Shown here: piece by piece, positions 33,339 to 64,000 of the stretch
How positions within the stretch are numbered: the first letter of the stretch is position 1
Layout: each line of letters begins with the position of its first letter
Virus record (IMG/VR): IMGVR_UViG_3300044701_000569
Coordinates: 124,001-188,000 of that record
DNA length: 64,000 bases
Strand: one strand, 5' to 3'
Made by a program: the position numbers and the translations under genes
Notes under the pieces: model-generated
The model's input: only the letters and a program-made list of their open reading frames with translations
The model's database searches: none
What the model was told of the DNA's origin: nothing

Positions 33339-33339
33339 G

Positions 33340-35232: not shown

Positions 35233-35239
35233 TTTACGA

Positions 35240-35245: not shown

Positions 35246-35274
35246 ATATAAAGCACTATTAGGGGTTATTACAG

Positions 35275-36768: not shown

Positions 36769-36777
36769 GGAATCAGC

Positions 36778-37719: not shown

Positions 37720-37741
37720 TAAATCCTCATTCTTTAGAGTA

Positions 37742-37749
37742 TATAAATA
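37742..37749 (+). promoter_or_regulatory. exact T4 late promoter TATAAATA inside an 8-bp inverted repeat (37735-37754)
   Basis: TAGAGTAT-ATAA-ATACTCTA, followed by TAGGGGTT and ATG 37771. Confidence 0.72.
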
Positions 37750-37770
37750 CTCTACTAGGGGTTTTATAAT

Positions 37771-42288: not shown

Positions 42289-43208
42289 GCCAAAAAATTA
42301 AAGTTGTTGATTATGACATCATATACCTATCCTATGATGAACCAAATGCCGAAAAAAATTATGCAGATTTGTGTAAAAAGATACCGTGGGCAAAACGTGT
42401 TCACGGTGTTAAAGGATCCGATGCAGCACACAAAGCCTGTGCTCGTCTAAGCGAAACTGATAGGTTCATCACAGTTGACGGTGACAATGTTGTTAGAGAA
42501 GAATTTTTAAATCAAGAAATTGATTTTGTTGAACACACAGATCTTACAAATTGTGTAATCAGTTGGAGCGGCCGCAATGCTATCAACGGGTTAATGTATG
42601 GTAACGGTGGATTAAAATGTTGGCCTAAAGATTTTGTTCTCAATATGAAAACACATGAAGCAGCGGATCCAACAAACAAACACGCACAGGTTGACTTTTG
42701 CTGGGATGTGCAGTATATTCAAATGAACAGTTGTTATTCAGATGTATACAACAATGCTACGCCTGCACAGGCTTGGAGAGCAGGTTTTAGAGAAGGAGTT
42801 AAACTAGCTCTTGATAGAGGAGTAAAACCTTCAAAGGAAGACTTTCTAAAAAATCATTGGCGTTGTTTGCATTGGCTTTATATTTGGACAATGGTCGGAA
42901 CTGATATTGAAAATGGTAAATGGGCAATACTAGGGGCTAGAGAGGGTCTTTATAAAACTATGCTTACTGAATGGGACTATGTAAACGTTCGTGATTTTGA
43001 ATACCTTAATGATCTTTGGGCTAAAGAATTTGAAGCAATGCAAGATTCTGACATTGATTCTAGAACTACATTTCTTGGACAAGAACTTAGTGAAAAACTA
43101 AGCATTCCTATAGGTGAAGTACTAACATCGGATCAAAGTAAATTTTTTAAAACAGTTTACGAGCATCCTGCTAGAACTGATCACCAAAGGTTTATTGAGC
43201 GCCTATGA
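42285..43208 (+). CDS. glycosyltransferase-like protein (GT-A, DGD motif), paralog of 56199
   Basis: YDIIYLSYDEPNAE..Y..L......KRVHGVKGSDAAHK.CA...TDRFITVDGDN, LMYGNGGLK, AWRAGFRE.VKL. Confidence 0.62.
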   Translation: MSQKIKVVDYDIIYLSYDEPNAEKNYADLCKKIPWAKRVHGVKGSDAAHKACARLSETDRFITVDGDNVVREEFLNQEIDFVEHTDLTNCVISWSGRNAINGLMYGNGGLKCWPKDFVLNMKTHEAADPTNKHAQVDFCWDVQYIQMNSCYSDVYNNATPAQAWRAGFREGVKLALDRGVKPSKEDFLKNHWRCLHWLYIWTMVGTDIENGKWAILGAREGLYKTMLTEWDYVNVRDFEYLNDLWAKEFEAMQDSDIDSRTTFLGQELSEKLSIPIGEVLTSDQSKFFKTVYEHPARTDHQRFIERL

Positions 43209-44599
43209 GCAAAAGCTATTACAATATTAATGCAGAAAATATTAGAGAAGAACTAGATAAAGTAAGTTGTTCTATGTGTCTTGCTAAATGGACACAAGTT
43301 ACTATGCATTTGCATAACGGACACACACATAGCTGTCATCATCCTGTTCCCCATAAGATTCCTCTAGAAGAACTACTAGAAAGTCCCCACGCACTACATA
43401 ATACACGTTTTAAAATTGAGCAGAGAGAAAAAATGCTTAAAGGTGAACGACCTAAAGAGTGCGACTACTGTTGGAATATAGAAGATTTAGGCAAAGACTA
43501 TCTCAGCGACAGACATTTTAAAAGCGGAGAATATTGGAGTTCAGAATACAAAGATGAAATTCTAAAAGACCCACTACGCAAGGATTTTCTTCCTACATAC
43601 CTAGAAGTTAGTTTTTCAAATGTTTGCAATTTTAGCTGCATGTATTGCAGTCCGCAGATTAGTTCAAAGTGGGTTGACGATGTTAAAAGAAATGGTCCTT
43701 ATGATCTAGGTGATTTTAAACATGCTGATTTAAGTTATTTAGATCAAAAAGGTTTAACTCCTATACCTGAAAGGGAAGACAATCCTTATATTGACGCATT
43801 TTGGGAAATATGGCCTGAGTTATATCAAAAACTTAGAGTGTTTAGAATTACTGGTGGAGAACCTTTACTAAGCAAACATACTTGGAGAATTCTAGAGTAT
43901 GTTCAAGCTAATCCTAATCCTAACATTGAAATAATTATCAATAGTAATTTGTGTGTGCAAGATAATTTTATTGATAGATTAATAAAAATAGGTAATGATC
44001 TTATTACTAATTCTAAGGTAAAAAGATTTGAAATCTACACCAGTGTTGAGAGTGAAGGACGCCAAGCTGAATATATACGTCCAGGATTAGATTACGACAA
44101 ATTTATAAACAATCTAATACGTGTGACTACTGAGATGCCAATGATTAAATGGCGTTCAAAAGTAGTAATTATGGCAACATATAATCTGTTGAGTATACCT
44201 AGATTTAGAAAACTACTTGAATGGTTATTAGAGTACAGAAAAACTCATTCAAACCCTCAATGGAAAAACATTTGGATTGATATTAGTTATCTTCGTTATC
44301 CTAGTTGGCAAACGGTTAGTCTAGCTGACGAAAGTATGCTAAAGATTATAGAATCTGATCTTGAATTTTTAAAAGCAAACGATCAAAATATTGTAGGTTG
44401 GCACGGATTTCAAGATACAGAAATTGAAAAGTTTGCTAGAATGTATAAGTATGCTGTTGAGTCAAGACAGAAGCTAAATCCTATAGAAAAAGAACGTTTT
44501 TACAATTTCTTTAACCAGCATGATCAACGCAAGGGTTTTAATTTTGTAGAGGTGTTTCCTGAGTTGGAAGAATTTTATAATGACTGTAGATCGAAGTAA
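43205..44599 (+). CDS. radical SAM enzyme with an N-terminal Cys/His-rich twitch-like domain
   Basis: CNFSCMYC (CxxxCxxC), ITGGEPLL, INSNL; N-terminal CLAKW...HSCHHP...CDYCW. Confidence 0.92.
   Translation: MSKSYYNINAENIREELDKVSCSMCLAKWTQVTMHLHNGHTHSCHHPVPHKIPLEELLESPHALHNTRFKIEQREKMLKGERPKECDYCWNIEDLGKDYLSDRHFKSGEYWSSEYKDEILKDPLRKDFLPTYLEVSFSNVCNFSCMYCSPQISSKWVDDVKRNGPYDLGDFKHADLSYLDQKGLTPIPEREDNPYIDAFWEIWPELYQKLRVFRITGGEPLLSKHTWRILEYVQANPNPNIEIIINSNLCVQDNFIDRLIKIGNDLITNSKVKRFEIYTSVESEGRQAEYIRPGLDYDKFINNLIRVTTEMPMIKWRSKVVIMATYNLLSIPRFRKLLEWLLEYRKTHSNPQWKNIWIDISYLRYPSWQTVSLADESMLKIIESDLEFLKANDQNIVGWHGFQDTEIEKFARMYKYAVESRQKLNPIEKERFYNFFNQHDQRKGFNFVEVFPELEEFYNDCRSK
43779..43807 (+). repeat. 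29-nt exact direct repeat, copy 1 (copy 2 at 45148-45176)
   Basis: acaatccttatattgacgcattttgggaa occurs identically in both adjacent rSAM paralogs (encodes NPYIDAFWE). Confidence 0.85.
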
Positions 44600-45917
44600 A
44601 CTTTCAGAATACCATTTAATACATCTAAAGAAAAGTGACGAGATTTCGTCTACTTTCTGTTCTGCTAAATGGCATATGGTTACCCTGCATCTTGCACAGG
44701 GAGAAACTCATAGTTGTTACCATCCGTGGACACACAAAGTTCCCCTAGAAGAATTAAAAAATAATCCAGGTGCAATACATAATACACTCTTTAAAAAGAG
44801 TCAACGTAAACTTATGCTCAATGGAGAACGTCCTAAAGAGTGTGAATACTGCTGGCGTATGGAAGATTTAGGTAATATCAGTGATAGAATAATTCGTAAT
44901 GCTGAACCTTATGCTAAAAATGACCTAGACACTTTTAAAACATACACTGGCGACGAGGATGTCTACCCGCGCCATGTAGAAGTGAGCTTTAGTACAACCT
45001 GTAATCTTAAATGTTCTTACTGTAATCCTACAGTAAGTTCTAAGTGGCTTGAAGAAGTTAATCAATATGGCGGTTATAAAACAAGTACTGAGTTTAATGA
45101 CTATATCAAACCAGGTAAACCTCTACCATTTATATTAGATAGAGAACACAATCCTTATATTGACGCATTTTGGGAATGGCTACCGGACGCATACCCTCAT
45201 ATGCATGTCCTTCGTGTCACTGGCGGTGAGCCTCTTATGAGTAAACACACGTTTACTCTGCTGGATTACATTGCTGAAAATCCTAATCCTAAACTAGAAG
45301 TTGTAGTTAACTCTAATATGTGTGTGCCTGATAAGCTGATTGATCAAGCTATAGCAGCAGGTAAAAAGATAGTAGAACGTGTGGGTGTATTTAAGATGTT
45401 TGCAAGTCTTGACAGCGTTGGTGCTCAAGCCGAATATCAACGTTACGGTTTAAATTTTGAACAGTTTACAAAAAATGTAAGACGTTTCTTAGATGAAATC
45501 CCCAACAGCAAAGTTTCATTTACTTGCACCTTTAATGTATTCAGTGTTCCTAATGTAAAAGGCTTTATGGAATATATGTATAGTTTACATAAAGATTACG
45601 GTAAGAGAATAAACTTTGACACACCGTATTTGCGTTTTCCACCACATCAGTGTGTACAGATATTGCCAAATGAGTATGTAAAATATTTAGAGGCTGCTGA
45701 AGAATACATGATAGAAAAGTCATTTCCTCAGCTTACAATTGACAAGATTCAACGATTAAAAAGTTATATGACAAATAAAACTTTTACAGAAGAACAGTTA
45801 TCTACGTACAGAAAAGACTTTGTTATATTTGTAGACGAACACGATAAACGCAGAGGAACAAATTTCTTAGAGACTTATCCTGAGCTAAAAGAATTTTACG
45901 AGTTGTGTAATGAATGA
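44580..45917 (+). CDS. radical SAM enzyme with an N-terminal twitch-like domain; tandem paralog of 43205
   Basis: CNLKCSYC, VTGGEPLM, VNSNM; N-terminal CSAKW...HSCYHP...CEYCW. Confidence 0.92.
   Translation: MTVDRSKLSEYHLIHLKKSDEISSTFCSAKWHMVTLHLAQGETHSCYHPWTHKVPLEELKNNPGAIHNTLFKKSQRKLMLNGERPKECEYCWRMEDLGNISDRIIRNAEPYAKNDLDTFKTYTGDEDVYPRHVEVSFSTTCNLKCSYCNPTVSSKWLEEVNQYGGYKTSTEFNDYIKPGKPLPFILDREHNPYIDAFWEWLPDAYPHMHVLRVTGGEPLMSKHTFTLLDYIAENPNPKLEVVVNSNMCVPDKLIDQAIAAGKKIVERVGVFKMFASLDSVGAQAEYQRYGLNFEQFTKNVRRFLDEIPNSKVSFTCTFNVFSVPNVKGFMEYMYSLHKDYGKRINFDTPYLRFPPHQCVQILPNEYVKYLEAAEEYMIEKSFPQLTIDKIQRLKSYMTNKTFTEEQLSTYRKDFVIFVDEHDKRRGTNFLETYPELKEFYELCNE
45148..45176 (+). repeat. 29-nt exact direct repeat, copy 2
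   Basis: Identical to 43779-43807. Confidence 0.85.
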
Positions 45918-46770
45918 AATTTACATTAAATTTTCTAATGACTCGTATATTCAGATAGAATTATTAAAAAATAATTTTGTTGATGAATGGCTAGAAGTTT
46001 TTCAAAAAACTTCTAAATCAAATATTGGAACATTTAGAATAACTCCGCTAGTAGGATTAGAGTATTGCGATAATGAAATTAATAAATCGATAGATCGTCT
46101 TAATGAAATTTTTGCCAAACTTAACTCTTTAACAGGTGTATCTGCCAACATTCCGGTGTTAACAAGACAAAATATATCAAGAAAACTGTGCAATAAAATA
46201 CATCGTATTTTTACAACTCTTGTAAATTCTCAAGGTACAAAGTATAATTTTGGTTCGTCAATTCAACTTAACGGATTAGATTTAAAAAACCATAGAGATT
46301 TAATATATGAAATAAACGACAACATTCATTATGTTGAAAAAATTTTTCATGCTAACTCAGAATTTTTAAAAAATAATCAATCAAATTATGGATTGTTAAA
46401 TTTTAAAAACAAAAAAATAGAAAAAATTAGAAAAGATTATTTTAAATTTTTAACTAATGACACACAGTATGATGTTTTTATAAACGCAAATATTTGCGGC
46501 AAAAGCTATTTAAATTGTTTTTGGGACAATGATATACCAACAAATTATGATATAAAAAACGAAGAAAGTTATTGCGCTGATTTAGAATTTTTTATTCATA
46601 AGCCATCGTTTATTGACCTTATGCAGTATACTGAGTTTACAAACTGGTTACAGAAATATAGTCTTCCAGTTAATAATATAACATCTGGCAGAATGCCTGT
46701 AGGTAAAATAAAGGACAAACTGCTTAAAGATACAGACAGCATAGAAATAAAGAATATCGAATATGCTTAA
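45910..46770 (+). CDS. hypothetical protein, paralog of 53717
   Basis: Shares IH..F, N..IH..E, GK.....F..N, W, G..(P/E)VG.I spacing with 53717..54547; overlaps both neighbours by 8 nt. Confidence 0.65.
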   Translation: MNEIYIKFSNDSYIQIELLKNNFVDEWLEVFQKTSKSNIGTFRITPLVGLEYCDNEINKSIDRLNEIFAKLNSLTGVSANIPVLTRQNISRKLCNKIHRIFTTLVNSQGTKYNFGSSIQLNGLDLKNHRDLIYEINDNIHYVEKIFHANSEFLKNNQSNYGLLNFKNKKIEKIRKDYFKFLTNDTQYDVFINANICGKSYLNCFWDNDIPTNYDIKNEESYCADLEFFIHKPSFIDLMQYTEFTNWLQKYSLPVNNITSGRMPVGKIKDKLLKDTDSIEIKNIEYA

Positions 46771-47719
46771 AAAGATTTGGTTTAAAAAAGATTATGAAAC
46801 TTTTTTTATTACATGGAGTTTACATAACCTATGTAACTTTCGCTGCGACTACTGTCCACCAAATTTAAATAACGGCACTACAAAAAATATTTCATTTAAG
46901 CATGTAGAAACGTTTTTTAACAATCTAAGACAAAAGTTACCAAACAAAAAATTTATATTTGCATTTAGTGGCGGAGAACCAACTCTTCATCCTGAGTTTA
47001 TTGACATGATCAAATATCTTAGCGACAATGGTTGTGAAATATGTATGACCTCAAATGGTAGTAGGAGCATTGATTGGTGGCAACGTGCAGAACCTTATGT
47101 TGATCACTTAGTTTTTAGTTATCATCCTGGTTGGACTAAACCTACAAAGCTAAAAGAAAATATAGATTTTTTAACACAAACTAGTTGGGTAAATCTTGAT
47201 TTGATGATGAATCCTACTCATTGGGACGAAATCATTTCATTAGGTGAATCTTTTAAAGACAAGCCTAATATTGCTGTAACTTACTTGCCAATACAAAAAG
47301 ATTTTGGTAATGGTGCTAATGGTTTAATTGATTACACAGAACAACAGTTAGAATTCCTTAAGAATCCTCCTAATTACTGGGGAAAGTTTCAACCTGCTAA
47401 ACATAAATTAGAAAAATGTAAAGGACAGTTTGGTAGAGGGTTAAAATTTATGGAAACATCTGAAGGAACAAGACAGTTAGATTACAAATATTTAATTGCA
47501 AACGATCTTAATAGATTTAAGGGTTATGAATGTAACCTAGGCATGGAAGGTCTAATTGTTGAAATAAACGGTGATATATACAATGCTTATTGCCATGTAG
47601 GAGGTGTTGTAGGTAATATTTTTACCGGCGAATATAATCTAACAGACACTCCAACTATTTGCCCTGCTAATTATTGTTCCTGTTCAGTTGACATTGAAAT
47701 CTCAAAGAGAAAAATATGA
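46763..47719 (+). CDS. radical SAM enzyme with a C-terminal Cys-rich twitch/SPASM-like domain
   Basis: WSLHNLCNFRCDYC, FSGGEPT, TSNGS; C-terminal CNLGMEGL..EINGD...AYC...CPANYCSCSVD. Confidence 0.92.
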   Translation: MLKKIWFKKDYETFFITWSLHNLCNFRCDYCPPNLNNGTTKNISFKHVETFFNNLRQKLPNKKFIFAFSGGEPTLHPEFIDMIKYLSDNGCEICMTSNGSRSIDWWQRAEPYVDHLVFSYHPGWTKPTKLKENIDFLTQTSWVNLDLMMNPTHWDEIISLGESFKDKPNIAVTYLPIQKDFGNGANGLIDYTEQQLEFLKNPPNYWGKFQPAKHKLEKCKGQFGRGLKFMETSEGTRQLDYKYLIANDLNRFKGYECNLGMEGLIVEINGDIYNAYCHVGGVVGNIFTGEYNLTDTPTICPANYCSCSVDIEISKRKI

Positions 47720-49032
47720 CTAAAAAAAGAGACAGTTTCTGCATAATGCCTTTCATACATCTTCATAATATGAGCAGTGGTCTTATGAAGATGTGCTGTA
47801 TAACAGAAAAGCCAATTGTAGATGATTTTGGTAAAACTGTTTTTATAGGCAATCAGCCTATCAACGAAGTGTGGAACAACAACTTTATGCAGACTGTGCG
47901 CAAGTTTATGCTTGAAGGCAAAGAACTTTCATTATGCAAAGACTGCTATGATGTAGAAGATAGTGGTGGCAAAAGTTTACGTAATGAATATAATGAAAAT
48001 TACAAAGAACAATTTACACAGTTTATTGATGAAGCAAAAACTAATGATGGCAAGATTAAAACGTTTCCACCGTTTATTGAATTAAGAACTGGGAACAACT
48101 GTAATAGTGCTTGCCGTATGTGTAATACTAATGACAGCAGCTTAGTATATAAAGAAAACACAGAAATTCACAAGACTCTAAAATCTAATGGGTTTGATTC
48201 TCGCACAGTAGAACACGGATATAGAATGATGGGAGATCCTGAGAAAATTATTTTTGGTCTACAGGATGATAGAATGCAGACTAGGGTAATGGACTTAGAT
48301 AAGCATTTTGATGAAATAATTGAAAACATACATCATATAAAATTAATTACACTCAGTGGTGGAGAACCTTTCCTATTAGAAAAAACAGCAGTTCTTTTAG
48401 AAGAACTTGCAAACAAGAACCCTAATGTAATTTTATACATTAATACTAACGGATCTATTCTTAGCGATAGATTAATATCTGCTCTAAAGCGTATTGAAGA
48501 AGTTAGAATCTGCGTAAGTCTTGATGGACATGGAGCTATACAAGAGTATATTAGATATCCGCTCAAATGGGAAAAGATTGAAAGAAATATCTATCAATTA
48601 AAATCTTTAACCAAGAAAGGATTTTATCTAAATTTTAATATTACAGTACAAGCACTGAATGTACTCAATCTAGATCCTTTATTAACGATGCTGGTAACTG
48701 ATTTTATTGGACATCATGTTAATCTTTCATTCTTAACAAATCCTACACATTTTGCTGTTCAGCAGTTACCACAGGCTGTAAAAGAACGAGCAGTTGAGCT
48801 TAACAAGGAGTTAGCTAATAAAATAAATTCAGTGCCATCATTGCCTGGTTATTTTACTGAAAACAAAGTAAGACTAGCAGAACGGTTACTTGAATTAAAT
48901 TCTTTTATGCTAGCAGAAACAGCGCCTAATCCTGAAATGTTTGAAAGATTTAAAGCTAACATAAAGATTTATGACTATTACAGAAAACAACAGCTCGCAG
49001 ACTATGCACCAGATTGGATTCCTTTTCTATGA
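47716..49032 (+). CDS. N-terminal twitch-domain radical SAM enzyme
   Basis: CIMPFIHL...MCC...CKDCY..E..G.KS.R; ELRTGNNCNSACRMC; LSGGEPF; INTNGS. Confidence 0.92.
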   Translation: MTKKRDSFCIMPFIHLHNMSSGLMKMCCITEKPIVDDFGKTVFIGNQPINEVWNNNFMQTVRKFMLEGKELSLCKDCYDVEDSGGKSLRNEYNENYKEQFTQFIDEAKTNDGKIKTFPPFIELRTGNNCNSACRMCNTNDSSLVYKENTEIHKTLKSNGFDSRTVEHGYRMMGDPEKIIFGLQDDRMQTRVMDLDKHFDEIIENIHHIKLITLSGGEPFLLEKTAVLLEELANKNPNVILYINTNGSILSDRLISALKRIEEVRICVSLDGHGAIQEYIRYPLKWEKIERNIYQLKSLTKKGFYLNFNITVQALNVLNLDPLLTMLVTDFIGHHVNLSFLTNPTHFAVQQLPQAVKERAVELNKELANKINSVPSLPGYFTENKVRLAERLLELNSFMLAETAPNPEMFERFKANIKIYDYYRKQQLADYAPDWIPFL

Positions 49033-50012: not shown

Positions 50013-50013
50013 T

Positions 50014-56197: not shown

Positions 56198-56198
56198 T

Positions 56199-56882
56199 AT
56201 GTACGACATTGTATTCATAAGCTATCAAGAACCTAACGCTGAAAAAAATTGGGAAAATCTTAAGTCAAGATTTTCTACGGCTAAAAGAGTGCATGGTATA
56301 AAAGGCATACATCAAGCACACATTGCTGCGGCTAAAAAGTGTTTTACAAAGATGTTTTGGGTAGTTGATGGCGACGCAGAAATTTTAGACACTTTTGATT
56401 TTAATTATACAGTGCCTGAGTGGGAGTTAGAAACAGTACATGTTTGGCGCAGTAAAAATCCTATAAACGATTTAGTTTATGGTTATGGGGGTGTAAAACT
56501 ATTACCTCAGCGATTGACTAAAAACATGGATATATCTAAACCAGATATGACTACAAGCATATCGTCATATTTTCGAGCAATGCCTGACGTTTCAAACATT
56601 ACGGCATTCAACACAGATCCATTTAACACATGGAAAAGCGCATTTAGAGAATGTGCTAAATTAGCAAGTAAAACTATAATCAGACAAAACGAGGATGAAA
56701 CAAATGAAAGGCTGCAAATTTGGCAGAATGTTGGACAGGACAGACCTTTTGGAGAATATGCTATTCGGGGTGCTTACAGCGGCAGTAATTTTGGTAATTT
56801 ACATAGGGGTATCCCAGATGTCTTAAAACAGATAAACGACTTTGATTGGCTAGAGGAACAGTTTCGTGCAGAAAATTTCTAA
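56199..56882 (+). CDS. glycosyltransferase-like protein (GT-A, DGD motif), paralog of 42285
   Basis: YDIVFISYQEPNAE..W..L.....KRVHGIKGIHQAH..AA....FWVVDGDA, LVYGYGGVKL, TWKSAFRECAKL. Confidence 0.62.
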   Translation: MYDIVFISYQEPNAEKNWENLKSRFSTAKRVHGIKGIHQAHIAAAKKCFTKMFWVVDGDAEILDTFDFNYTVPEWELETVHVWRSKNPINDLVYGYGGVKLLPQRLTKNMDISKPDMTTSISSYFRAMPDVSNITAFNTDPFNTWKSAFRECAKLASKTIIRQNEDETNERLQIWQNVGQDRPFGEYAIRGAYSGSNFGNLHRGIPDVLKQINDFDWLEEQFRAENF

Positions 56883-57939
56883 CATACGCCAGGTTCATAT
56901 AGAACTAACAGACAAGTGCCAAGCACAATGTCCTATGTGTGCTAGAAATTTTCACGGGGGTCCTACTAGACCGTTTATAAAAAACGGTGACATTTCTATT
57001 GAACAGTTTAAGGAATGGTTTCCAAAAGCATTTTTATCTCAGCTAACAAACTTTTATAGTTGTGGGAATTATGGTGATCCTGCTTTTGCAAAAGATTGTT
57101 TAGAAATATATTCATATGTTCGAGAATGTAATCCAACTACACGTCTAGCTCTGCATACAAACGGAGGAATGAGGAATCCAGATTGGTGGAGTAAACTAGC
57201 AAAGGTTTTAGGATCTTCTGCTAACTCAGAAGTTGTCTTTGCTGTAGACGGATTTAAAGACAAGCACGAATTATATCGCAGAAATACAAATTTTGATAAA
57301 GTTATAGAAAACATGACAGCATTTATCGAAGCTGGCGGCCGAGCAAGGGTTGACAGTCTAGTATTTGCACACAACGAGCACGATGTAGAGGAACTAGAAC
57401 AATATTTAAATAATCTAGGTGTTGATAATGTAAATTTTGTTAGTACAACACGATTTTATGAAATGGATTCTTTTCCTGTACACGATTTAGACAATCGTCA
57501 TGTGTATGATTTAAAACCAGCACAGCGAATAGAATTTAAAAGAAATCCTAATAATGCTTTGGATCAATTAGTAGACCAACAGTTTAGAGATAAAGTAATT
57601 GGTGCTGCTGAAATATCACCTCTTTGTGTATCTGAACAGGGTATATACGTTGATCCTTACGGAAACATTCTGCCCTGCTGCTGGATAGGCAGTGATTATC
57701 TAGAAGAACCAATAGAAGAAATTTTGCCAATACATTATTTAAGAAATTTAAGTGTACAAAATACAAAGAACATGCTTAAAGATATAACAGTACCTAATTG
57801 TCAAGATAAGGTACTTTACAATTCGTCGGATGTTTTGTGGTCTAAACTGTCAGATTATTGGACAGGAGAAAACAAATGTATGACCTGTGTAAAGGTCTGT
57901 TCAAAGGCTTTGTATAATAGTAGAAAGAATAATGAATAA
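56866..57939 (+). CDS. radical SAM enzyme with a C-terminal twitch/SPASM-like domain
   Basis: HIELTDKCQAQCPMCAR; CGNYGDP in place of GGEP; HTNGG; C-terminal PLC..EQGIYVDPYG.ILPCCW...CMTCVKVC. GTG start after GAGGA. Confidence 0.9.
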   Translation: MQKISNIRQVHIELTDKCQAQCPMCARNFHGGPTRPFIKNGDISIEQFKEWFPKAFLSQLTNFYSCGNYGDPAFAKDCLEIYSYVRECNPTTRLALHTNGGMRNPDWWSKLAKVLGSSANSEVVFAVDGFKDKHELYRRNTNFDKVIENMTAFIEAGGRARVDSLVFAHNEHDVEELEQYLNNLGVDNVNFVSTTRFYEMDSFPVHDLDNRHVYDLKPAQRIEFKRNPNNALDQLVDQQFRDKVIGAAEISPLCVSEQGIYVDPYGNILPCCWIGSDYLEEPIEEILPIHYLRNLSVQNTKNMLKDITVPNCQDKVLYNSSDVLWSKLSDYWTGENKCMTCVKVCSKALYNSRKNNE

Positions 57940-58915
57940 TTTTCAAAATATACCCTGGCAAAACATAAAGCAGTTTGGCCAACAAACAATGCTACAGAAT
58001 CCTCTGTTCACTGTGTCTTGGATACTAGCAAGATTCTGTAATTACAACTGTTCTTATTGTTGGCCTTATGCTAGATCCAGCACTCCCGACCATCAAACTT
58101 TAGAAACTTATATTAAAACAATGGATAGTATCAAAGAGCAGGCTCGAAATAATGGATTTACAAACTTTCATTTTAGTTTTAGCGGAGGAGAACCGACTGC
58201 TTATAAACAGTTTGGAGACCTTATTGAACATTATGCAAGTGATGCATTACCTGACTATCAAAGTATACACATGACAACTAACTTATCGCCAGGTAGTAAG
58301 TGGTGGAGTAAATGGTTAGAAGCTACTAGTACATTACATAGAAAAAGTATTACAGCTAGTTTCCATGCTGAACATGCACAAGAACAGGAATTTGGAGATA
58401 AGTGTCTACAATTAATGAATGCCGGAGTATTTGTAACCATAAATCAAGTTATGGTTCCTTCGCAGTTTTATGATCTTTATGCTAGGTGCGAACGATTTGT
58501 AGAAAGAGGTATTAATGTTACTCTTAAACCGCAGAGTGATCCTACTGCTAGTTTTGTAGTTAACGGTTATACTGAAGATCAAATACATAAGATGCAGACA
58601 GGATTCCCACAGAAGTGGTTAGGTGAAGAGGTTTCACAAGTAGAACTTCAGGACTATGAGGGTAATAAATATTACATCGATCAAGCTGAACGGTTTAACG
58701 CATTTGGATTTAATAAATTTAAAGGTTGGCTTTGCAATGCAGGATACCAAGGTATTGTAATAAGAGAAAATGAAGTAAAAAGAAGTTATAGTTGTAAAGA
58801 TGTTCCGATTGGTACACTTGAAAACGGTTTTACAATTTTTGATAGCCCAACAGTATGTATTAGTGAATCGTGTGTTAGTAGCGCAGACAGCAAAATTCCT
58901 AAAAGGAGAAATTAA
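57932..58915 (+). CDS. radical SAM enzyme with a C-terminal Cys-rich auxiliary domain
   Basis: WILARFCNYNCSYC, FSGGEPT, MTTNLS; C-terminal GWLCNAG...SYSC...CISESCVSSAD. Confidence 0.9.
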   Translation: MNNFQNIPWQNIKQFGQQTMLQNPLFTVSWILARFCNYNCSYCWPYARSSTPDHQTLETYIKTMDSIKEQARNNGFTNFHFSFSGGEPTAYKQFGDLIEHYASDALPDYQSIHMTTNLSPGSKWWSKWLEATSTLHRKSITASFHAEHAQEQEFGDKCLQLMNAGVFVTINQVMVPSQFYDLYARCERFVERGINVTLKPQSDPTASFVVNGYTEDQIHKMQTGFPQKWLGEEVSQVELQDYEGNKYYIDQAERFNAFGFNKFKGWLCNAGYQGIVIRENEVKRSYSCKDVPIGTLENGFTIFDSPTVCISESCVSSADSKIPKRRN

Positions 58916-59460
58916 TGTTTAAAGAAGTAGCAATAGATTATGATTTTAGTATTTTTCTAAATGCTGATTACAATCAACACGAAGGTAGCTGTGTTAAACA
59001 CCAAGTATACGAACTAACAGACATTCATGAAAAGTTTGGAGGATTTCCTAACACTTTCTGTCTAGAAAATACTAAAATACATCAACTTTGGTGGACGGCT
59101 GATAATATAGACTTTAGCAGACTAGGCAGTCAACTTGGTATGGAGATTATTACAGTTAGTTCAATACTTCAACCTCCTGGCAATGTAATTCCGCTACACA
59201 GAGATACATTCTTTCAAATTAAAAAGAGATATCCTGACGATACTAGAAAAAAGGTTAGAGCTAATATGTATCTAGAAGATTGGAAAGTTGGACACATCAT
59301 TCAATATAGTAAAGATTCGGATTCTAACGAATGGGCCAACCATACACACTGGAAAGCTGGTCAAGGTTTATTATGGGATGAATCTATCCTTCATATTGGC
59401 GCAAACATAGGGTTACAAAACAAGTATACTCTACAGATATCCGGCTTTTTAAATGAATAA
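58915..59460 (+). CDS. 2OG-Fe(II) dioxygenase (AspH/LpxO-like cupin fold)
   Basis: QPPGNVIPLHRD (HxD), W..G.GLLWDESILHIGAN (distal His), KYTLQISG; AGGAG RBS. Confidence 0.75.
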   Translation: MFKEVAIDYDFSIFLNADYNQHEGSCVKHQVYELTDIHEKFGGFPNTFCLENTKIHQLWWTADNIDFSRLGSQLGMEIITVSSILQPPGNVIPLHRDTFFQIKKRYPDDTRKKVRANMYLEDWKVGHIIQYSKDSDSNEWANHTHWKAGQGLLWDESILHIGANIGLQNKYTLQISGFLNE

Positions 59461-60646
59461 AATAGTTCTATGGTACGATGATTTGCATAAAAGTAACTGT
59501 AGTTATGCGGATGCTGTCTACCCTACTAGAACTATTGTCAACAAATTAAACACTAATAAAATAGAATTTTCTATAAAACATCTAGGTGATCCTGTTGATC
59601 ACTCAGATACAAATGTTTACATTATTGAATTGTTGAATGTCTATATCGACTATGACATTTTCTCTTTAATTACAGAAGAAACAAAAGAGTTACTAAGACA
59701 AAATGTAAAATTAGTACTCTATTACCCAAGAGAAGGTCATGCGTTTGATAATTGGCTATTAAACATTTATAAAAATCTTAAAAAACATAATCTGTTAACA
59801 AATAAAATTTTCTTTGCATACGGTGATAACGAATTTGTAGAAAATTATTTAACATATATCAAAGAGCACAATATTGAAGATTTTTTAATCCCAATATTGT
59901 TTGATTTTTATAAAGGTGACTATTATGAAAACGCTAATTGTTTTAACAGATCCCTTAGTCACAAAAGAAAATTTGATTATTTGTTTTATAATGGAAAGAT
60001 AAGACCACATAGGCTATACGCAGTTGCTGAATTAAAGCATCGTCAAATTTTAAATAACGGTCTAGTAAGCCTAATTGGATCAAAACATACGATAGGTCAT
60101 TATGAAATAGATGAGTGTTTAAAAATACTAACAGAAAATAATTGCTGTCATTCTTATATAAAAGAATTTGCAAACAATTGGTCATCGTTAGTTCTTGATA
60201 CTGATAATAACAATTTTTCTCAAAACGCAGTTTACAATAATGCAATTAATCATTATTCCTCAACTTTTTTTAGTGTAATAAGTGAAACAGGGTTAGTATA
60301 TAGATTTATTACAGAAAAGATTTATAAACCTATGGCAAATTTACATCCGTTTATTCTTATAGGACCACCAAATATGTTAAGTTTATTAAGATCTAAAGGA
60401 TATAAGACATTTCCTGAAATGTTTAATGAATCATATGATAGTGAATTAGATCCTGTTAAACGAATTAACTTAGTTTTAGACGAGATAGAAAAATTTGCTA
60501 ATCTACCTACTGAAGAAAAACAAGAAAAATTTAAATCTATTAAAGACAAATTAGAATTTAATAAATCTCTATATATAAAAACTGCAAGGGATTCTAAAGC
60601 TAAAGATTTTATTGATATGTTTAAAACGATAGGTAATACAAAATGA
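59453..60646 (+). CDS. putative GT-B glycosyltransferase with a GT10-like TEK motif; paralog of 52494
   Basis: YLFYNGKIRPHR; FSVISETG..YRFITEKIYKPM..LHPFILIGPPN.L..L...GYKTF..MFNESYD. Confidence 0.5.
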   Translation: MNKIVLWYDDLHKSNCSYADAVYPTRTIVNKLNTNKIEFSIKHLGDPVDHSDTNVYIIELLNVYIDYDIFSLITEETKELLRQNVKLVLYYPREGHAFDNWLLNIYKNLKKHNLLTNKIFFAYGDNEFVENYLTYIKEHNIEDFLIPILFDFYKGDYYENANCFNRSLSHKRKFDYLFYNGKIRPHRLYAVAELKHRQILNNGLVSLIGSKHTIGHYEIDECLKILTENNCCHSYIKEFANNWSSLVLDTDNNNFSQNAVYNNAINHYSSTFFSVISETGLVYRFITEKIYKPMANLHPFILIGPPNMLSLLRSKGYKTFPEMFNESYDSELDPVKRINLVLDEIEKFANLPTEEKQEKFKSIKDKLEFNKSLYIKTARDSKAKDFIDMFKTIGNTK

Positions 60647-61251
60647 AAGTTGAGATTGAAGATGTTTTATTTTGGATGGATGCCATACGTAATAGCGAAG
60701 ATAGGTATCGAACTCTTGAAAGTTTTTGGAAAGGTCAAATTCGAAGTAAAGTATGGTTAATTAATAATTTAGATTTATTAGTTAATGCTTATCCTAAATC
60801 TATTGTAATTCATGGGGGATGGAATGGAGTTCTTGCTAGTTTACTTTTTAATAGTAAAATAATGAATATTTCTCATATTACCAGTGTTGATATTGATACA
60901 GTCTGCGAAGAAACTGCAAGAACAGTAAATAAACGTCAAGAAATTGAAGGTAGGTTTAAAGCAGTTACAGCTGATATGTGTACATATCAATATGAACAAG
61001 TACCAGACATTGTTATTAATACTAGTTGCGAGCATATAACACAGGAGCAATATGAGGAATGGTTAAATAATGTTCCAGAACAAACTCTTATTGTTTTACA
61101 AAGTAATAATTACTTTGAGTTAGAAGAACATATAAGATGTAGTATTGATGTAGAAGATTTTAAAAATATGTCTAAAATAAATGTTATGTACAGCGGTGAA
61201 TTTGAAACACCAAAGTATAAAAGATTCATGCTAATAGGAAAAAAGAAATGA
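60643..61251 (+). CDS. class I SAM-dependent methyltransferase
   Basis: IVIHGGWNG (motif I), TSVDID (motif II acidic), TADM, DIVINTSCEH (motif IV). Confidence 0.8.
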   Translation: MKVEIEDVLFWMDAIRNSEDRYRTLESFWKGQIRSKVWLINNLDLLVNAYPKSIVIHGGWNGVLASLLFNSKIMNISHITSVDIDTVCEETARTVNKRQEIEGRFKAVTADMCTYQYEQVPDIVINTSCEHITQEQYEEWLNNVPEQTLIVLQSNNYFELEEHIRCSIDVEDFKNMSKINVMYSGEFETPKYKRFMLIGKKK

Positions 61252-62660
61252 CTGATAAATTTTGGTGTAATTCAGGTAACAAGCAGTTAGAAAAATACCA
61301 ACAAGAAATTGAAACAAAGTCCGGTACACCAACCTTTTGCGTATTACCATGGATACATTTTGCTACACGCCCTAATGGAGATATGAGACTTTGCTGTTCA
61401 GCTAACGCTAGCGGCGCCGGCCAAGATCATGAAGTTGGGTTGGTAAAAATGGAACACGGTCGTCCTGCAAACTTTGGTCGTGAAACTCCTATGCAAGCAT
61501 GGAACAACGACTATATGAAAAGTGTTAGAACAACTATGATAAAAGGTGAAATACCATCAAGTTGTTCTAAGTGTTTTAGAGAAGAAGAAAAAGGCGTAGT
61601 TAGTAAACGTGTTTGGGAAACAGGCACTTGGATGCTAGATGGTATTGATCTTAAGGAATTAATTGAAAATACAGACGAAGATGGTATTGTACCAGAACGT
61701 TTGCAGTATCTTGATTTAAGACTAGGACACACTTGTAATTTAAAATGTGTTATGTGTAGTCCTCATGATAGTAGTAGATGGGTAGATGACCATAAAAAGA
61801 TTTATCCTTTATTTCAAAATGACTCGCTTAAAAAGCAAATGAGTTGGGACGCGGGATCTTTTAATAATTATTGGTATGAAAATCCTGTATTTTGGGAACA
61901 GATGTATGCACAGATACCCTATCTAAAGCAGGTTTACTTTGCAGGCGGCGAACCTTTAATGATAAAGGAACACAAGAATCTTTTAAAAGAAATTGTACGC
62001 CAAGGTTATGCTGATAAGATTTTAATTAGATACAATTCTAACGGATTATTACTAGACGAAGAAACATTAGAGTTATGGAAAAATTTTAAGAAAGTAAAAT
62101 TTGCTGTGAGTATTGATGATATTACTGACAGAAACTATTACATTAGATATCCGTCTGATTGGGATAGATTAGAAAAGAATATGCATATTCTTGATAATAC
62201 GCCTAGCAACGTACAAGTAAGTATTGCTACAGCTATTCAAATCCTAAACATAAAAACTCTACCTGAATTAGCAAAGTGGAAAATTACACAGAATTTTAAA
62301 AAGATAAATTTTGAAAATGTTTATGAAGGTATACAAGCCGGCGGCGGAATAGTAAACATGCACTTATTGTATATACCTACTTTTTTAAGTATACGATGCT
62401 TGCCTAAAGAGGACAAGCAAGAAGTAAGAAAAATATTTGAAGATTTTAGATTATGGCTTCTAGAAAACTATACACAAGATTCAGACTTTTGGAATGTAAA
62501 TCCGTATGGGTGGAAGCGTTGGCAGGCTGTTTTAGATTTTATGGACGGTGAAGATCATACACACGAACTACCGGCATTTAAAGAATACATACATAAACTA
62601 GATTCTATTAGAAACACAGATTTTAAAACTATTTTTCCGTTATTGAGTCACTTAGTATGA
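61248..62660 (+). CDS. N-terminal twitch-domain radical SAM enzyme
   Basis: CVLPWIHF..RPNG..RLCC...CSKCF.EE..G..SKR; DLRLGHTCNLKCVMC; FAGGEPL; YNSNG. Confidence 0.93.
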   Translation: MTDKFWCNSGNKQLEKYQQEIETKSGTPTFCVLPWIHFATRPNGDMRLCCSANASGAGQDHEVGLVKMEHGRPANFGRETPMQAWNNDYMKSVRTTMIKGEIPSSCSKCFREEEKGVVSKRVWETGTWMLDGIDLKELIENTDEDGIVPERLQYLDLRLGHTCNLKCVMCSPHDSSRWVDDHKKIYPLFQNDSLKKQMSWDAGSFNNYWYENPVFWEQMYAQIPYLKQVYFAGGEPLMIKEHKNLLKEIVRQGYADKILIRYNSNGLLLDEETLELWKNFKKVKFAVSIDDITDRNYYIRYPSDWDRLEKNMHILDNTPSNVQVSIATAIQILNIKTLPELAKWKITQNFKKINFENVYEGIQAGGGIVNMHLLYIPTFLSIRCLPKEDKQEVRKIFEDFRLWLLENYTQDSDFWNVNPYGWKRWQAVLDFMDGEDHTHELPAFKEYIHKLDSIRNTDFKTIFPLLSHLV

Positions 62661-63655: not shown

Positions 63656-64000
63656 TCAGCGGAATGTCTGCTGCACAAGTACACCAATTTCTATCACAAA
63701 TTATTTCTGATGCTGGAATACGAAAATCTCCTTTATAGATATTTCCTAAACTACCGCCAACCCTGCAAGTAGCTCGGTGTACTTCACCATCCCAGTTAAT
63801 CATTAGACTTTCAATACCTGCACTGCATTTCCAATCTTTAAATTTATTCATATGCAGTTTTATTATATCATTAGCATGATATAGATCTTTGTTGTCAACT
63901 ATGCAATTTTCTTTTGCTGTTGCGTTGTTTTCTAATAGATATTTTAAGTCATTAGGTTGATATCTCATGTCGTCGAACCAATCGTGATCACCTTCGGTCC
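63636..64000 (-). CDS. 3' end of a probable radical SAM gene (C-terminal Cys-rich auxiliary domain); 5' part lies beyond the window
   Basis: Frame stays open to the window edge (TEGDHDWFDDMRYQ...), so the track's Met is internal. NKFKDWKCSAGIESLMINWDGEVHRATC...CDRNWCTCAAD matches the auxiliary domain of 46763, 62657 and 49029. Confidence 0.8.
   Translation of the reverse strand, partial: TEGDHDWFDDMRYQPNDLKYLLENNATAKENCIVDNKDLYHANDIIKLHMNKFKDWKCSAGIESLMINWDGEVHRATCRVGGSLGNIYKGDFRIPASEIICDRNWCTCAADIPLTKTSIL

Follow-up and report, generated by a model that had tools for sequence, protein, structure and literature searches.

Most characterised SPASM/twitch radical-SAM enzymes act on peptides, although twitch enzymes such as BtrN and BlsE act on small sugar substrates. 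The curated family NCBIfam NF033640 (N_Twi_rSAM, 'twitch domain-containing radical SAM protein'), in which the additional iron-sulfur domain lies at the front of the protein, is uncharacterised: we found no characterised member and no paper on it, and no Swiss-Prot model aligns beyond the barrel. A sequence-only reading of a 64,000-nt stretch of a viral genome (positions 124,001 to 188,000 of IMG/VR record IMGVR_UViG_3300044701_000569; here, the window) had pointed to six paralogues of this kind, proposed from their glycosyltransferase neighbourhood that their substrate is a carbohydrate, and suggested that some 'bacterial' family members may really be phage genes. Here we show that the genome, a CheckV-complete aquatic jumbo myovirus of 357,559 bp, carries all 13 of its radical-SAM genes in one island next to its tail-fibre genes, seven of them from NF033640, and that the same gene set sits beside sugar genes in predatory Bdellovibrionota, which suggests radical chemistry on sugars.

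Thirteen radical-SAM genes in one island

The six paralogues are real, and their number had been understated. All six are open frames on the + strand (Table 1), and when scored against NF033640, as the sequence-only reading had itself set as a test, each matches end to end with E-values from 4e-89 to 7e-119 and 299.5–397.5 bits against a cut-off of 170. As pairwise identity among the copies is only 18–42%, yet every copy scores far above the curated cut-off, this is not a chance resemblance. Pfam places SPASM (PF13186) at residues ~8–110, followed by Radical_SAM, in the four members with a 'CC' motif, whereas the two His-rich members receive no SPASM hit. An alignment shows four invariant N-terminal Cys (C25, C44, C86 and C89 of the first protein), then the invariant CxxxCxxC (C141, C145, C148) and GGEP. 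The N-terminal motif originally proposed is therefore right in its elements, but as written it omits a stretch of about 40–55 residues between 'CC' and 'C..C'. The His-rich variant keeps all four Cys and adds conserved His residues, and that motif is conserved in relatives from phages and bacteria.

A seventh family member lies just past the window end, and six further radical-SAM genes of two other types are interleaved with the paralogues. Five of these are of a 'type B' that is weakly STM4011-like, one of them circularly permuted such that its Cys-rich domain has also moved to the N-terminus, and one is of a 'type C'. A Pfam Radical_SAM search of the 357-kb genome returned exactly 13 hits, all within 22 kb. 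They form the central part of a roughly 30-kb enzyme island in the late, structural arm of the genome, following the baseplate and tail-fibre genes on the same strand, and are interleaved with a GT-A-fold protein and its paralogue, a methyltransferase-like protein and further candidate GT and SGNH proteins; just beyond the window are a PP-loop-like protein and Asp/Arg-hydroxylase and cupin proteins. The ORFs from 39215 to 63655 abut or overlap.

Table 1. Features of the island and its upstream context. Positions are those of the window; related phage loci are the 19 long loci compared; L numbers denote individual loci on genome contigs, of which L078 and L108 are on probable mis-binned phage contigs.
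Position	Strand	Length (aa)	Assignment	Observations
31284..38763	+		Five tail-fibre or fibre-like genes, directly upstream	PHROG tail fibre, tail collar and tail protein hits for the first three; the last two (36778-37719, 37771-38763) have no PHROG or Pfam hit and are only 36% identical paralogues of each other; gaps to the island at most 93 nt
39215..40910	+	285/287	Two paralogous proteins; candidate glycosyltransferases, unconfirmed	DxD-like 'DTD' motif, read by eye; no HMM hit; Atlas: viral-only clusters with a weak Mannosyl_trans3 lead
42285..43208	+	307	Predicted GT-A / nucleotide-diphospho-sugar transferase fold, VDGD motif	No Pfam hit; AF2 model pLDDT 81; all top Foldseek PDB hits are GT2/GT-A glycosyltransferases; VIA Z 8-10 over residues 4-157, also matching sugar nucleotidyltransferases; at least 8000 metagenomic homologues; 38-50% identical to homologues in the genome-contig loci, the highest (50%) in L078
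43205..44599	+	464	N_Twi_rSAM, His-rich subfamily	NF033640 at 314.7 bits; all four auxiliary-cluster Cys plus CxxxCxxC; groups with Bdellovibrionota orthologues at support 100 (starred); His motif conserved
44580..45917	+	445	N_Twi_rSAM, His-rich subfamily	NF033640 at 337.5 bits; 40% identical to 43205; 36% identical to RsoM2USA gp202
46763..47719	+	318	Radical SAM, type B; C-terminal Cys-rich domain	Pfam Radical_SAM; weak STM4011-family similarity, 62.5 bits against a cut-off of 200; paralogous to 57932, 62657 and 63636
47716..49032	+	438	N_Twi_rSAM	NF033640 at 316.1 bits; SPASM at residues 9-78, Radical_SAM at 125-301
49014..50012	+		Radical SAM, type B, circularly permuted; N-terminal Cys-rich domain	By BLAST, residues 8-103 match residues 228-317 of 46763, and 130-324 match its residues 8-199; Radical_SAM at 142-256, weak SPASM at 39-75; copies similar in sequence (28% identity) in two Pseudobdellovibrionaceae loci, L083 and L114
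50002..51297	+	431	N_Twi_rSAM	NF033640 at 343.2 bits; SPASM at residues 17-85; subfamily includes Bdellovibrionota orthologues, support 96 (starred); the start first proposed, 50014, is an in-frame ATG four codons inside
51290..52504	+	404	N_Twi_rSAM	NF033640 at 299.5 bits; SPASM at residues 8-71; groups with a copy from an unclassified MAG (L086), support 99 (starred)
52494..53720	+	408	Candidate GT10-like, unconfirmed; variable part of the island	Shares a C-terminal 'TEK'-containing block with 59453-60646; in 0 of 19 related phage loci; no HMM hit
53717..56197	+	276 each	Three ORFs; the last two SGNH-like by eye, unconfirmed; variable, lowest-GC part of the island	Last two are 46% identical paralogues starting 'KLVIFGDSFAD'; no Pfam or GDSL_2 hit and no NCBIfam hit (NCBIfam result covers 53717-54547 and 54544-55374 only); in 0 of 19 related loci; GC 0.29-0.30
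56199..56882	+	227	Paralogue of 42285; fold inferred from that paralogue's model	35% identity to 42285, E 2e-30; 40-61% identical to copies in the genome-contig loci: 61% in L078, 47% in L108, 40-46% in the Bdellovibrionota copies (L065, L069)
56866..57939	+	357	Radical SAM, type C; core module	Radical_SAM at residues 12-178; weak BlsE and W_rSAM_matur similarity, below cut-offs; in 19 of 19 related phage loci; 34-39% identical to Bdellovibrionota copies that lie next to the 61248 orthologue
57932..58915	+	327	Radical SAM, type B; core module	Radical_SAM; in 18 of 19 related phage loci at a mean of 65% identity; 50-54% identical to Bdellovibrionota orthologues
59453..60646	+	397	Candidate GT10-like, unconfirmed	Atlas: nearest family-bearing clusters are Glyco_transf_10, at a score of only 0.81; structural neighbours fused to Epimerase/GDP_Man_Dehyd or to methyltransferase domains; a GT10 probe of the phage's own genome found nothing, and no control genome gave a signal
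60643..61251	+	202	Methyltransferase-like; core module	Only a weak Methyltransf_25 hit, below cut-off; in 17 of 19 related phage loci; 34-40% identical to copies in the genome-contig loci, next to the GT-A gene in L065, L068 and L078
61248..62660	+	470	N_Twi_rSAM; most conserved member of the core module	NF033640 at 397.5 bits; more than 4000 metagenomic homologues, the best 120 at 70-79% identity; in 19 of 19 related phage loci; 46-49% identical to Bdellovibrionota orthologues; AF2 model pLDDT 93.3
62657..63655	+	332	Radical SAM, type B	Radical_SAM; paralogous to 46763
63636..64000	-	296	C-terminal part of a type B radical SAM gene that runs to window-equivalent 64526; core module	In 19 of 19 related phage loci at a mean of 58% identity
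64519..65850 (window-equivalent)	-		N_Twi_rSAM, seventh copy	Outside the window, following the preceding gene

Relatives in phages and in Bdellovibrionota

The seven paralogues fall into at least six old, anciently diverged subfamilies with bacterial (Bdellovibrionota) orthologues, as at least six label changes in the tree are forced by starred branches. A core module, comprising the GT-A-fold transferase, the methyltransferase-like protein and three radical-SAM types, is conserved in 16–19 of 19 long related phage loci, in what is a very abundant phage lineage; the PP-loop-like protein also belongs to the conserved module. The same module, together with tandem arrays of up to seven N_Twi genes, occurs in Bdellovibrionota chromosomes, where it lies beside GT2, UDP-glucose dehydrogenase, epimerase/dehydratase, Asn-synthase and PMT_2 genes. 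The family was found in 44 of 201 Bdellovibrionota genomes, against 3 of 301 Pseudomonadota and 1 of 301 Bacillota. Most cellular members are genuinely chromosomal and concentrated in Bdellovibrionota, but the suggestion that some 'bacterial' members are phage genes is true for some: two 'bacterial' MAGs that carry family members, labelled Gammaproteobacteria MED685 and Crocinitomicaceae, contain jumbo-phage contigs and hold full-length homologues of this phage's baseplate wedge protein, and their radical-SAM copies group with a copy from an IMG/VR viral contig.

The interpretation first offered is thus partly supported, as the family assignment is correct but the glycosyltransferase neighbourhood is not shown by profile searches within the window. 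Pfam and NCBIfam find no GT among the neighbours, and probes of the phage's own genome for GT2, GT8, GT10, GDSL, DUF5672 and Mannosyl_trans3 do not hit them; the candidate GT8-, GT10- and SGNH-like ORFs rest on motifs read by eye and on weak Atlas leads. The neighbourhood does hold at the level of predicted fold for 42285–43208 and, by sequence identity to it, for its paralogue, although VIA alignment cannot separate a GT-A glycosyltransferase from a sugar nucleotidyltransferase for 42285. It holds clearly across genomes. GT2 is the commonest Pfam family (12) among 135 neighbours in 13 Bdellovibrionota loci, with UDPG dehydrogenase and epimerases also present, and four of four sampled family members lie next to sugar genes. 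One family member is fused to a GT2-like domain, and a related phage has UDPG_MGDP_dh and Epimerase genes immediately upstream of its radical-SAM genes. In the cultured phage RsoM2USA, the His-rich member sits next to a gene whose N-terminus looks carbamoyltransferase-like by eye. Elsewhere in its genome, the phage studied here encodes a UDPG dehydrogenase, two NAD-epimerase/dehydratases, a DegT-type aminotransferase fragment, a carbamoyltransferase and a PfkB kinase, but shows no PMT_2, Bac_transf or Wzx, the three export or carrier families probed. The carbohydrate link is therefore supported by association, but is not proven.

What the island might do

It is conceivable that the radical-SAM enzymes modify a peptide or protein rather than a sugar, for example through cross-links, epimerisation or C-methyl-type tailoring, with the substrate being a virion protein such as the tail fibres or the 5131-aa protein, or a glycopeptide, and with the GT-like proteins adding sugars to the same protein. 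Besides the precedent of the peptide maturases, this would fit the presence of SkfB, CteB, SuiB and AlbA among the top structural matches, the fusion of one family member to a peptidase S8 fragment and of another to TPR repeats, the Asp/Arg beta-hydroxylase and cupin-like proteins that flank the island, the occurrence of the peptide S-glycosyltransferases SunS and ThuS among the Foldseek hits of 42285, and the proximity of the fibre genes. We nevertheless consider it unlikely, as the tightly packed ORFs leave no space for a short precursor gene, no PqqD/RRE-type domain is reported in any of the radical-SAM proteins, and the recurrent neighbours are sugar-nucleotide genes rather than peptide, protease or transporter genes.

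Two other readings appear less likely still. The island might hypermodify phage DNA or nucleotides to evade host restriction, perhaps by building and tailoring a glycan on a modified base, as phage GTs that decorate DNA with glycans have been described (cited in PMC12619734, refs 44 and 46), Viperin, MoaA and TYW1, which act on nucleotides or tRNA, are among the structural matches, the conserved module includes a PP-loop-like protein, the phage has a GTP cyclohydrolase I, and no export machinery was found among the families probed. On the other hand, searches of the phage found no TGT/DpdA and no QueC, its only thymidylate-synthase homologue scores like a canonical ThyA (332.7 bits), the bacterial module lies next to GT2, PMT_2 and UDPG-dehydrogenase genes that are typical of surface glycans, and the island lies in the late structural arm and not among replication genes. 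Alternatively, the pathway might remodel the host cell surface during infection, for superinfection exclusion or receptor masking: phage GTs that alter host serotype are well known, and the homologous Bdellovibrionota clusters, with PMT_2, GT2 and Asn synthase, look like surface-glycan loci. However, the probes revealed no lipid-carrier initiating transferase, flippase or GT-C enzyme in the phage genome, and the co-orientation with late virion genes, although inferred from position only, fits poorly with an early protective role.

The explanation that we favour, and regard as somewhat more likely than not, is that the island is a glycan or sugar tailoring pathway. What the analysis establishes is the family membership, the anatomy of the cluster, the conservation of its core module among related phages and the presence of that module beside sugar genes in Bdellovibrionota chromosomes; the pathway itself, the chemistry of its enzymes, for no member of which there is biochemical evidence, and the identity of whatever the glycan is attached to are inferences. 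As the phage encodes sugar-activating and sugar-modifying enzymes but none of the three export or carrier families probed, the product would most likely be built in the cytoplasm on a phage component, and because the island lies among late structural genes, our leading guess is a virion protein. This rests on gene position alone, and in one related phage the island is flanked by Thy1 and Hc1 rather than by fibre genes. Also against the sugar reading, the hydroxylases beside the island are of protein-modifying type, and the model's best structural matches mix peptide enzymes (SkfB, CteB, AlbA) with sugar enzymes (BlsE, DesII). In the pathway envisaged here, the four-Cys N-terminal domain would hold one auxiliary [4Fe-4S] cluster as electron sink or substrate anchor, and each radical-SAM subfamily would use the 5'-deoxyadenosyl radical to abstract a hydrogen from a different sugar position, with oxidation, epimerisation, dehydration, decarboxylation or C-C bond formation as possible outcomes, as twitch enzymes such as BtrN and BlsE do on small sugar substrates.

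Anatomy of the radical-SAM island

The IMG/VR virus record, which is 357,559 bp long and rated complete by CheckV, is that of a jumbo myovirus, and the window carries its baseplate and tail-fibre genes followed by the radical-SAM genes. The nearest cultured phages, PA5oct-like and Erwinia jumbo phages, share only about 30-34% identity in the baseplate hub protein. From 2301 to 63655 every gene is on the + strand, and between the fibre genes and the radical-SAM region the gaps are at most 93 nt. Throughout, genes are named by their start position in the window.

The sequence-only reading had described six radical-SAM paralogues with an auxiliary Fe-S (twitch) domain at the N-terminus, and this observation is confirmed, although it understates what is there. 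All six ORFs are open and match NCBIfam NF033640 ('twitch domain-containing radical SAM protein', N_Twi_rSAM) from end to end, over profile positions ~1-398, at 299.5-397.5 bits against a curated cut-off of 170. Pfam places SPASM (PF13186) at residues ~8-110 and Radical_SAM behind it in four of the six, the 'CC' proteins, whereas in canonical SPASM/twitch enzymes the auxiliary-cluster domain follows the barrel. In an alignment of seven paralogues, four N-terminal Cys, the radical-SAM CxxxCxxC motif (C141, C145, C148) and GGEP (G217-P220) are invariant; across 88 family members three of the four N-terminal Cys, C167, C170 and GGE remain invariant, and the fourth N-terminal Cys, C163 and the Pro of GGEP are each present in at least 90%. 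Four Cys would correspond to a single auxiliary cluster, and hence to a twitch domain rather than a full SPASM domain. The two His-rich proteins, 43205 and 44580, have no Pfam SPASM hit but keep all four Cys, and their extra motif, C[LS]AKW...T[HQ]SC[YH]HP...H.I...LHNT...C.YCW, is conserved in related phage contigs, in Bdellovibrionota and in a cultured phage, so that it marks a real subfamily and is not decay. The N-terminal motif given in the sequence-only reading is correct in its elements but as written skips a spacer of about 40-55 residues.

A seventh family member, scoring 326 bits, lies just outside the window, and six more radical-SAM genes lie between the family members. Five of these form a second family ('type B'), which otherwise has a C-terminal Cys-rich domain, and one is of a further type ('type C'). 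None of the six passes a curated NCBIfam cut-off: type B weakly resembles the STM4011 family, and type C weakly resembles BlsE and W_rSAM_matur. In one type B gene, 49014-50012, the Cys-rich domain is at the N-terminus, a second circular permutation within the same island; copies that resemble it in sequence, at 28% identity, exist in two Pseudobdellovibrionaceae loci (L083 and L114). This second, independent relocation suggests that domain order in SPASM/twitch enzymes is more flexible than the textbook architecture. Pfam Radical_SAM finds exactly 13 matches in the whole genome, all within 22 kb.

Features of the phage and of related loci (window positions or their equivalents beyond the window end, unless another source is named)
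Position	Strand	Feature	Remarks
8686-11313	+	baseplate hub/lysozyme	
11326-11763	+	gp25-like wedge protein	
11819-15253	+	gp6-like wedge protein	phrog_10646, E 1e-296
15256-30651	+	5131-aa ORF directly after the gp6-like wedge gene	almost free of Cys (0.1%); no collagen-like repeats
31284-38763	+	several tail-fibre proteins	one copy of TATAAATA lies 22 nt upstream of the start codon of 37771-38763
42285-43208	+	predicted nucleotide-diphospho-sugar transferase (GT-A) fold	DxD-like VDGD motif; no Pfam family
46763-47719	+	radical SAM, type B	C-terminal Cys-rich domain
49014-50012	+	radical SAM, type B, permuted	residues 8-103 match residues 228-317 of 46763; residues 130-324 match its residues 8-199
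52494-56197		variable stretch	GC 0.29-0.30, the lowest in the window (52000-56000), against about 0.33-0.35 in the flanking bins
56199-56882	+	paralogue of 42285	
56866-57939	+	radical SAM, type C	
57932-58915	+	radical SAM, type B	C-terminal Cys-rich domain
61248-62660	+	N_Twi_rSAM	
62657-63655	+	radical SAM, type B	C-terminal Cys-rich domain
63636-64526	-	radical SAM, type B	C-terminal Cys-rich domain
64519-65850	-	N_Twi_rSAM, seventh copy	
genome 46-49 kb		GT8 and weak GT2 hits	outside the window
genome 71555-72981, 84622-86421, 215480-216776, 285034-285657		a PfkB kinase next to an epimerase, a NodU/CmcH-type carbamoyltransferase, an epimerase next to UDPG dehydrogenase, and a DegT/DnrJ/EryC1 aminotransferase fragment	scattered outside the island
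genome 230054-230881		full DnaJ gene	
L014 (a relative) 2987-3187		Hc1 histone-like gene	
L147 (Ralstonia phage RsoM2USA) 6821-8203		gp202, His-rich N_Twi_rSAM	annotated 'hypothetical'

A T4-type late promoter was considered and rejected as a general signal here: the octamer TATAAATA occurs only twice in the 64 kb on both strands, against 12.6 expected from shuffles, and 8 times in the whole genome, and is thus depleted rather than enriched.

Distribution in phages and in Bdellovibrionota

The family is catalogued but uncharacterized, and it is very large. A profile of the seven paralogues finds 7,276 clusters at 50% identity with E <= 1e-30, and many of the highest-scoring representatives are natural tandem fusions of two or three family units in one polypeptide of 800-1400 aa, while others carry TPR, peptidase S8 fragment or GT2-like N-terminal domains. 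The protein 61248 has more than 4000 homologues in metagenomes, of which the best 120 are 70-79% identical and some lie on contigs of 270-360 kb. The protein 42285 has at least 8000, the best 120 being 60-97% identical and some occurring as ~535-aa fused forms, which is unusually strong conservation for a phage accessory gene. Forty-one IMG/VR loci were recovered, and in 19 long related loci a core is kept, consisting of type C 56866 (19 of 19), type B 57932 (18 of 19; mean identity 65%), the methyltransferase-like protein 60643 (17 of 19), N_Twi 61248 (19 of 19; 69%), type B 63636 (19 of 19), N_Twi 64519 (19 of 19; 67%) and a PP-loop-like protein whose SGGxDS and CxxCxxC motifs were read by eye (16 of 19). 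The stretch 52494-56197 is absent from all 19 and looks like a swappable cassette inside the island. As the flanks sampled reach only 10 kb, these counts do not cover genes upstream of about 51 kb, but two contigs found another way (L138 and L139) show the same upstream order of seven radical-SAM genes. A scan of viral contigs with 59453 returned only the near-identical contig, and no cultured-phage homologue of 57932 was found.

The same gene set is found in cellular genomes. The alignment of the seven paralogues was too divergent to reach these and the single protein 50002 found nothing, but a scan of one genome per prokaryotic species returned 74 loci, the great majority from the predatory Bdellovibrionota, including complete chromosomes and an isolate. 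These loci hold orthologues of 61248 (46-49% identity) next to type C (34-39%) and type B 57932 (50-54%), the methyltransferase-like gene (34-40%), the 42285/56199 family (38-46% in Bdellovibrionota loci, 47-61% in contigs that are probably mis-binned phage) and tandem arrays of up to seven N_Twi genes, including the His-rich type (37-41%). The neighbors include ATP synthase, AdoHcyase and other housekeeping genes, so the setting is chromosomal, and a complete Bacteriovoracaceae chromosome has no homologue of the phage baseplate protein. The family passes its cut-off in 44 of 201 sampled Bdellovibrionota genomes, often with eight or more copies and with 16 in one 1.9-Mb chromosome, compared with 3 of 301 Pseudomonadota, 1 of 301 Bacillota and 0 of 14 control genomes; these counts include the genomes that were used as search centers.

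In the family tree, the seven phage paralogues fall in at least six separate, well-supported subfamilies, each containing sequences from the cellular genome loci, nearly all of them Bdellovibrionota; only 43205 and 44580 share one subfamily. The paralogues are therefore old and presumably do different jobs, and are not recent duplicates made in the phage. For the 61248 subfamily, phage and bacterial sequences form sister clades (support 99 and 98), but with a root support of only 15 the direction of transfer is unresolved. We do not claim Bdellovibrionota as the host of this phage, as the shared genes show exchange or common ancestry only, and one bin with related phage contigs is labelled Crocinitomicaceae.

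The suggestion that some 'bacterial' members may really be phage genes holds for some of them. In the 61248 tree a well-supported subclade mixes MAG contigs labelled Gammaproteobacteria MED685, Neisseriaceae, Crocinitomicaceae and Planctomycetota with a second copy from an IMG/VR viral contig. The MED685 (1.2 Mb) and Crocinitomicaceae bins, with family members on contigs L108 (NZGL01000008.1) and L079 (JBDNIA010000282.1), each hold two or three contigs with homologues of this phage's baseplate wedge protein (38-58% identity, one of them covering the whole protein), and are contaminated with, or largely made of, jumbo-phage contigs. The Bdellovibrionota members, however, are chromosomal.

Gene context and the inferred carbohydrate substrate

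The sequence-only reading inferred a carbohydrate substrate from a glycosyltransferase neighborhood, and overall its interpretation is only partly supported. Inside the window the profile evidence is negative: Pfam and NCBIfam report no GT, SGNH, PP-loop or sugar-nucleotide family for any neighbor, and probes of the phage genome with GT10, GT2, GT8, GDSL_2, DUF5672 and Mannosyl_trans3 do not hit the island ORFs, although for GT10 and DUF5672 no control genome gave a hit either, so that those two are uninformative. Sequence and profile searches of the PDB with 39215, 59453, 42285 and the 42285 alignment returned nothing. At the level of the fold, a model of 42285 (pLDDT 81) matches GT2/GT-A glycosyltransferases exclusively among its top Foldseek hits, including RmlT, SunS/ThuS, BcsA, PBCV-1 A64R and TarP, but VIA-align, with Z 8-10 over residues 4-157, matches sugar nucleotidyltransferases equally well, and a nucleotide-diphospho-sugar transferase fold is the safe statement. 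The pairs 39215/40047, 52494/59453 and 54544/55367 remain candidates only, and the Atlas searches gave only leads.

Across genomes the association is consistent. Among 135 other neighbors in 13 Bdellovibrionota loci, GT2 is the commonest Pfam family (12 members, plus 8 Glyco_tranf_2_2), followed by UDP-glucose/GDP-mannose dehydrogenase (3) and epimerase/dehydratase (2). One Bdellovibrionales chromosome has eight radical-SAM genes in a row, followed by Asn synthase, an ulvan-lyase-like gene, GT2, UDPG dehydrogenase and PMT_2. All four sampled family representatives lie next to sugar genes, one representative is a GT2-like/Glyco_transf_7C-N_Twi fusion protein, and a related 272-kb phage contig has UDPG dehydrogenase and an epimerase directly upstream of its radical-SAM genes. 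In the present phage such sugar-nucleotide enzymes, including two NAD-epimerase/dehydratases, are encoded outside the island. The genome has no GT-C enzyme, initiating phosphotransferase or Wzx flippase (PF13231, PF02397 and PF01943 were not found), although the control genomes gave hits for these families.

The model of 61248 is confident (pLDDT 93.3, pTM 0.90) and shows an N-terminal Cys domain, the barrel and a helical C-terminal domain of about 90 residues. Its Foldseek neighbors in the PDB and Swiss-Prot are generic SPASM/twitch and other radical-SAM enzymes, both peptide-acting (SkfB, CteB, SuiB, AlbA) and sugar- or nucleotide-acting (BlsE, DesII, viperin, MoaA), and most align over the barrel only (residues ~140-400), so that structure gives no call on the substrate.

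The reading that we favor, if only as somewhat more likely than not, is a sugar or glycan tailoring pathway in which each subfamily would abstract a hydrogen at a different sugar position, with the N-terminal twitch cluster serving as electron acceptor or substrate anchor, as in BtrN-type enzymes. Family membership, the 13-gene island and its sharing as a module with Bdellovibrionota are established by the analysis, whereas the chemistry, the binding of a cluster by the N-terminal Cys and the target are inferred. The position of the island among late structural genes and the lack of export genes point to a cytoplasmic target, for which we favor a virion protein.

A peptide or protein substrate seems unlikely but possible: between 39215 and 63655 there is no unassigned space for a short precursor ORF, and no RRE-type (PqqD-like) family is reported in the Pfam or NCBIfam scans, yet a large protein substrate is not excluded. 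Hypermodification of DNA or nucleotides is more doubtful still, as the genome has no DpdA/TGT and no QueC, as 7-deazaguanine modification would require, and its one ThyA-type gene scores at a canonical level (332.7 bits) rather than as a divergent thymidylate-synthase-like hydroxymethylase of hydroxymethyl-pyrimidine modification; the lack of QueC and TGT also led us to reject a reading of the PP-loop protein, GTP cyclohydrolase I and the radical-SAM genes as a preQ0/deazaguanine pathway. Remodelling of the host surface is held to be equally improbable; PMT_2 is present next to the bacterial homologues.

If the enzymes do act on sugars, arrays of 7-16 paralogues per genome imply a rich, unexplored radical glycan chemistry that may contribute to the surface of predatory bacteria and of large phages. 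A bolder possibility, which we consider unlikely although the evidence does not rule it out, is that N_Twi_rSAM as a whole, with its roughly 7,300 clusters, is a family of radical enzymes that tailor sugars in glycoconjugates, and that this abundant aquatic jumbo-phage lineage uses a 13-rSAM assembly line, shared with predatory Bdellovibrionota, to build a heavily radical-modified glycan on its own virion. This would be the first radical-SAM-dependent virion glycosylation and a new class of glycan chemistry, in which each of six or more subfamilies performs a different C-H functionalization. In any case, an 'unknown radical SAM' now has a defined core module of five genes, a consistent sugar-gene context that includes a GT fusion protein, a clear taxonomic home in Bdellovibrionota and aquatic jumbo phages, and a cultured entry point in RsoM2USA gp202, which together make a testable proposal.

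Comparison with known systems

NF033640 has no assigned function, so membership explains nothing about mechanism, and we found no paper on N-terminal twitch or SPASM enzymes and none linking radical SAM, Bdellovibrio and GTs. What is new is the split into at least six old subfamilies, the His-rich subtype, the multi-copy arrays, the distribution over Bdellovibrionota and jumbo phages, and the sugar-gene context. The sugar-acting twitch enzymes BtrN (2-deoxy-scyllo-inosamine dehydrogenase) and BlsE (cytosylglucuronate decarboxylase), and the sugar-acting radical-SAM enzyme DesII, share a partial TIM-barrel core plus one auxiliary four-Cys [4Fe-4S] site, which in the present proteins is predicted; BlsE and DesII are among the best structural matches of the 61248 model, and the Cys spacing C-x18-C-x41-C-x2-C appears similar to that of BtrN. 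In those enzymes, however, the auxiliary domain follows the barrel, whereas here it precedes it and the helical C-terminal domain is extra, sequence similarity is far below any family cut-off, and the known enzymes work singly in antibiotic pathways rather than as arrays of 7-16 paralogues. By analogy, the present enzymes would work like twitch enzymes but are permuted. The SPASM/twitch RiPP maturases (SkfB, CteB, AlbA, SuiB, anSME) share the fold of the core and SPASM-type Cys motifs that Pfam recognizes, but differ in domain order, in the RRE domain and precursor-peptide gene that were not found here, and in the sugar genes that are the neighbors in our case.

Among virus-encoded glycan machineries, chlorovirus PBCV-1 capsid glycosylation (A64R) and mycobacteriophage virion glycosylation (cited in PMC12619734, ref. 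45) likewise involve a virus that carries its own cytoplasmic sugar-activating enzymes and GT-A-fold transferases. None of those systems is known to contain radical-SAM enzymes, and we found no paper linking radical SAM to jumbo-phage glycan or fibre genes; for the present phage, glycosylation of the virion is itself an inference. What sets this system apart from such viral machineries, and from sugar-tailoring twitch enzymes, is a 13-gene radical-SAM island in a phage structural arm, shared as a module with Bdellovibrionota loci that resemble surface-glycan loci. A 2025 paper describes freshwater 'moraphages' with DnaJ/DnaK, an Hc1 histone-like protein and four GT orthogroups, predicts Flavobacteriia as hosts and does not mention radical SAM (PMC12619734); the DnaJ gene of this phage and the Hc1 gene of a relative recall that lineage, though this resemblance alone does not make the two the same.

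The closest cultured counterpart is the Ralstonia jumbo phage RsoM2USA, the only cultured phage found with a full-length family member. Its gp202 belongs to the His-rich subfamily, is 36% identical to 44580 and scores 352 bits against a profile that we built from one of our alignments (A5). Only one radical-SAM gene was found around that locus, not thirteen, and it lies beside three ~283-aa paralogues that share an 'NGCSM.[FY]G' motif and a gene (gp199) whose N-terminus looks carbamoyltransferase-like by eye, all annotated 'hypothetical'. RsoM2USA also has the only cultured-phage homologue of the GT-A-fold protein 42285, at 44.6% identity. It makes a tractable model system.
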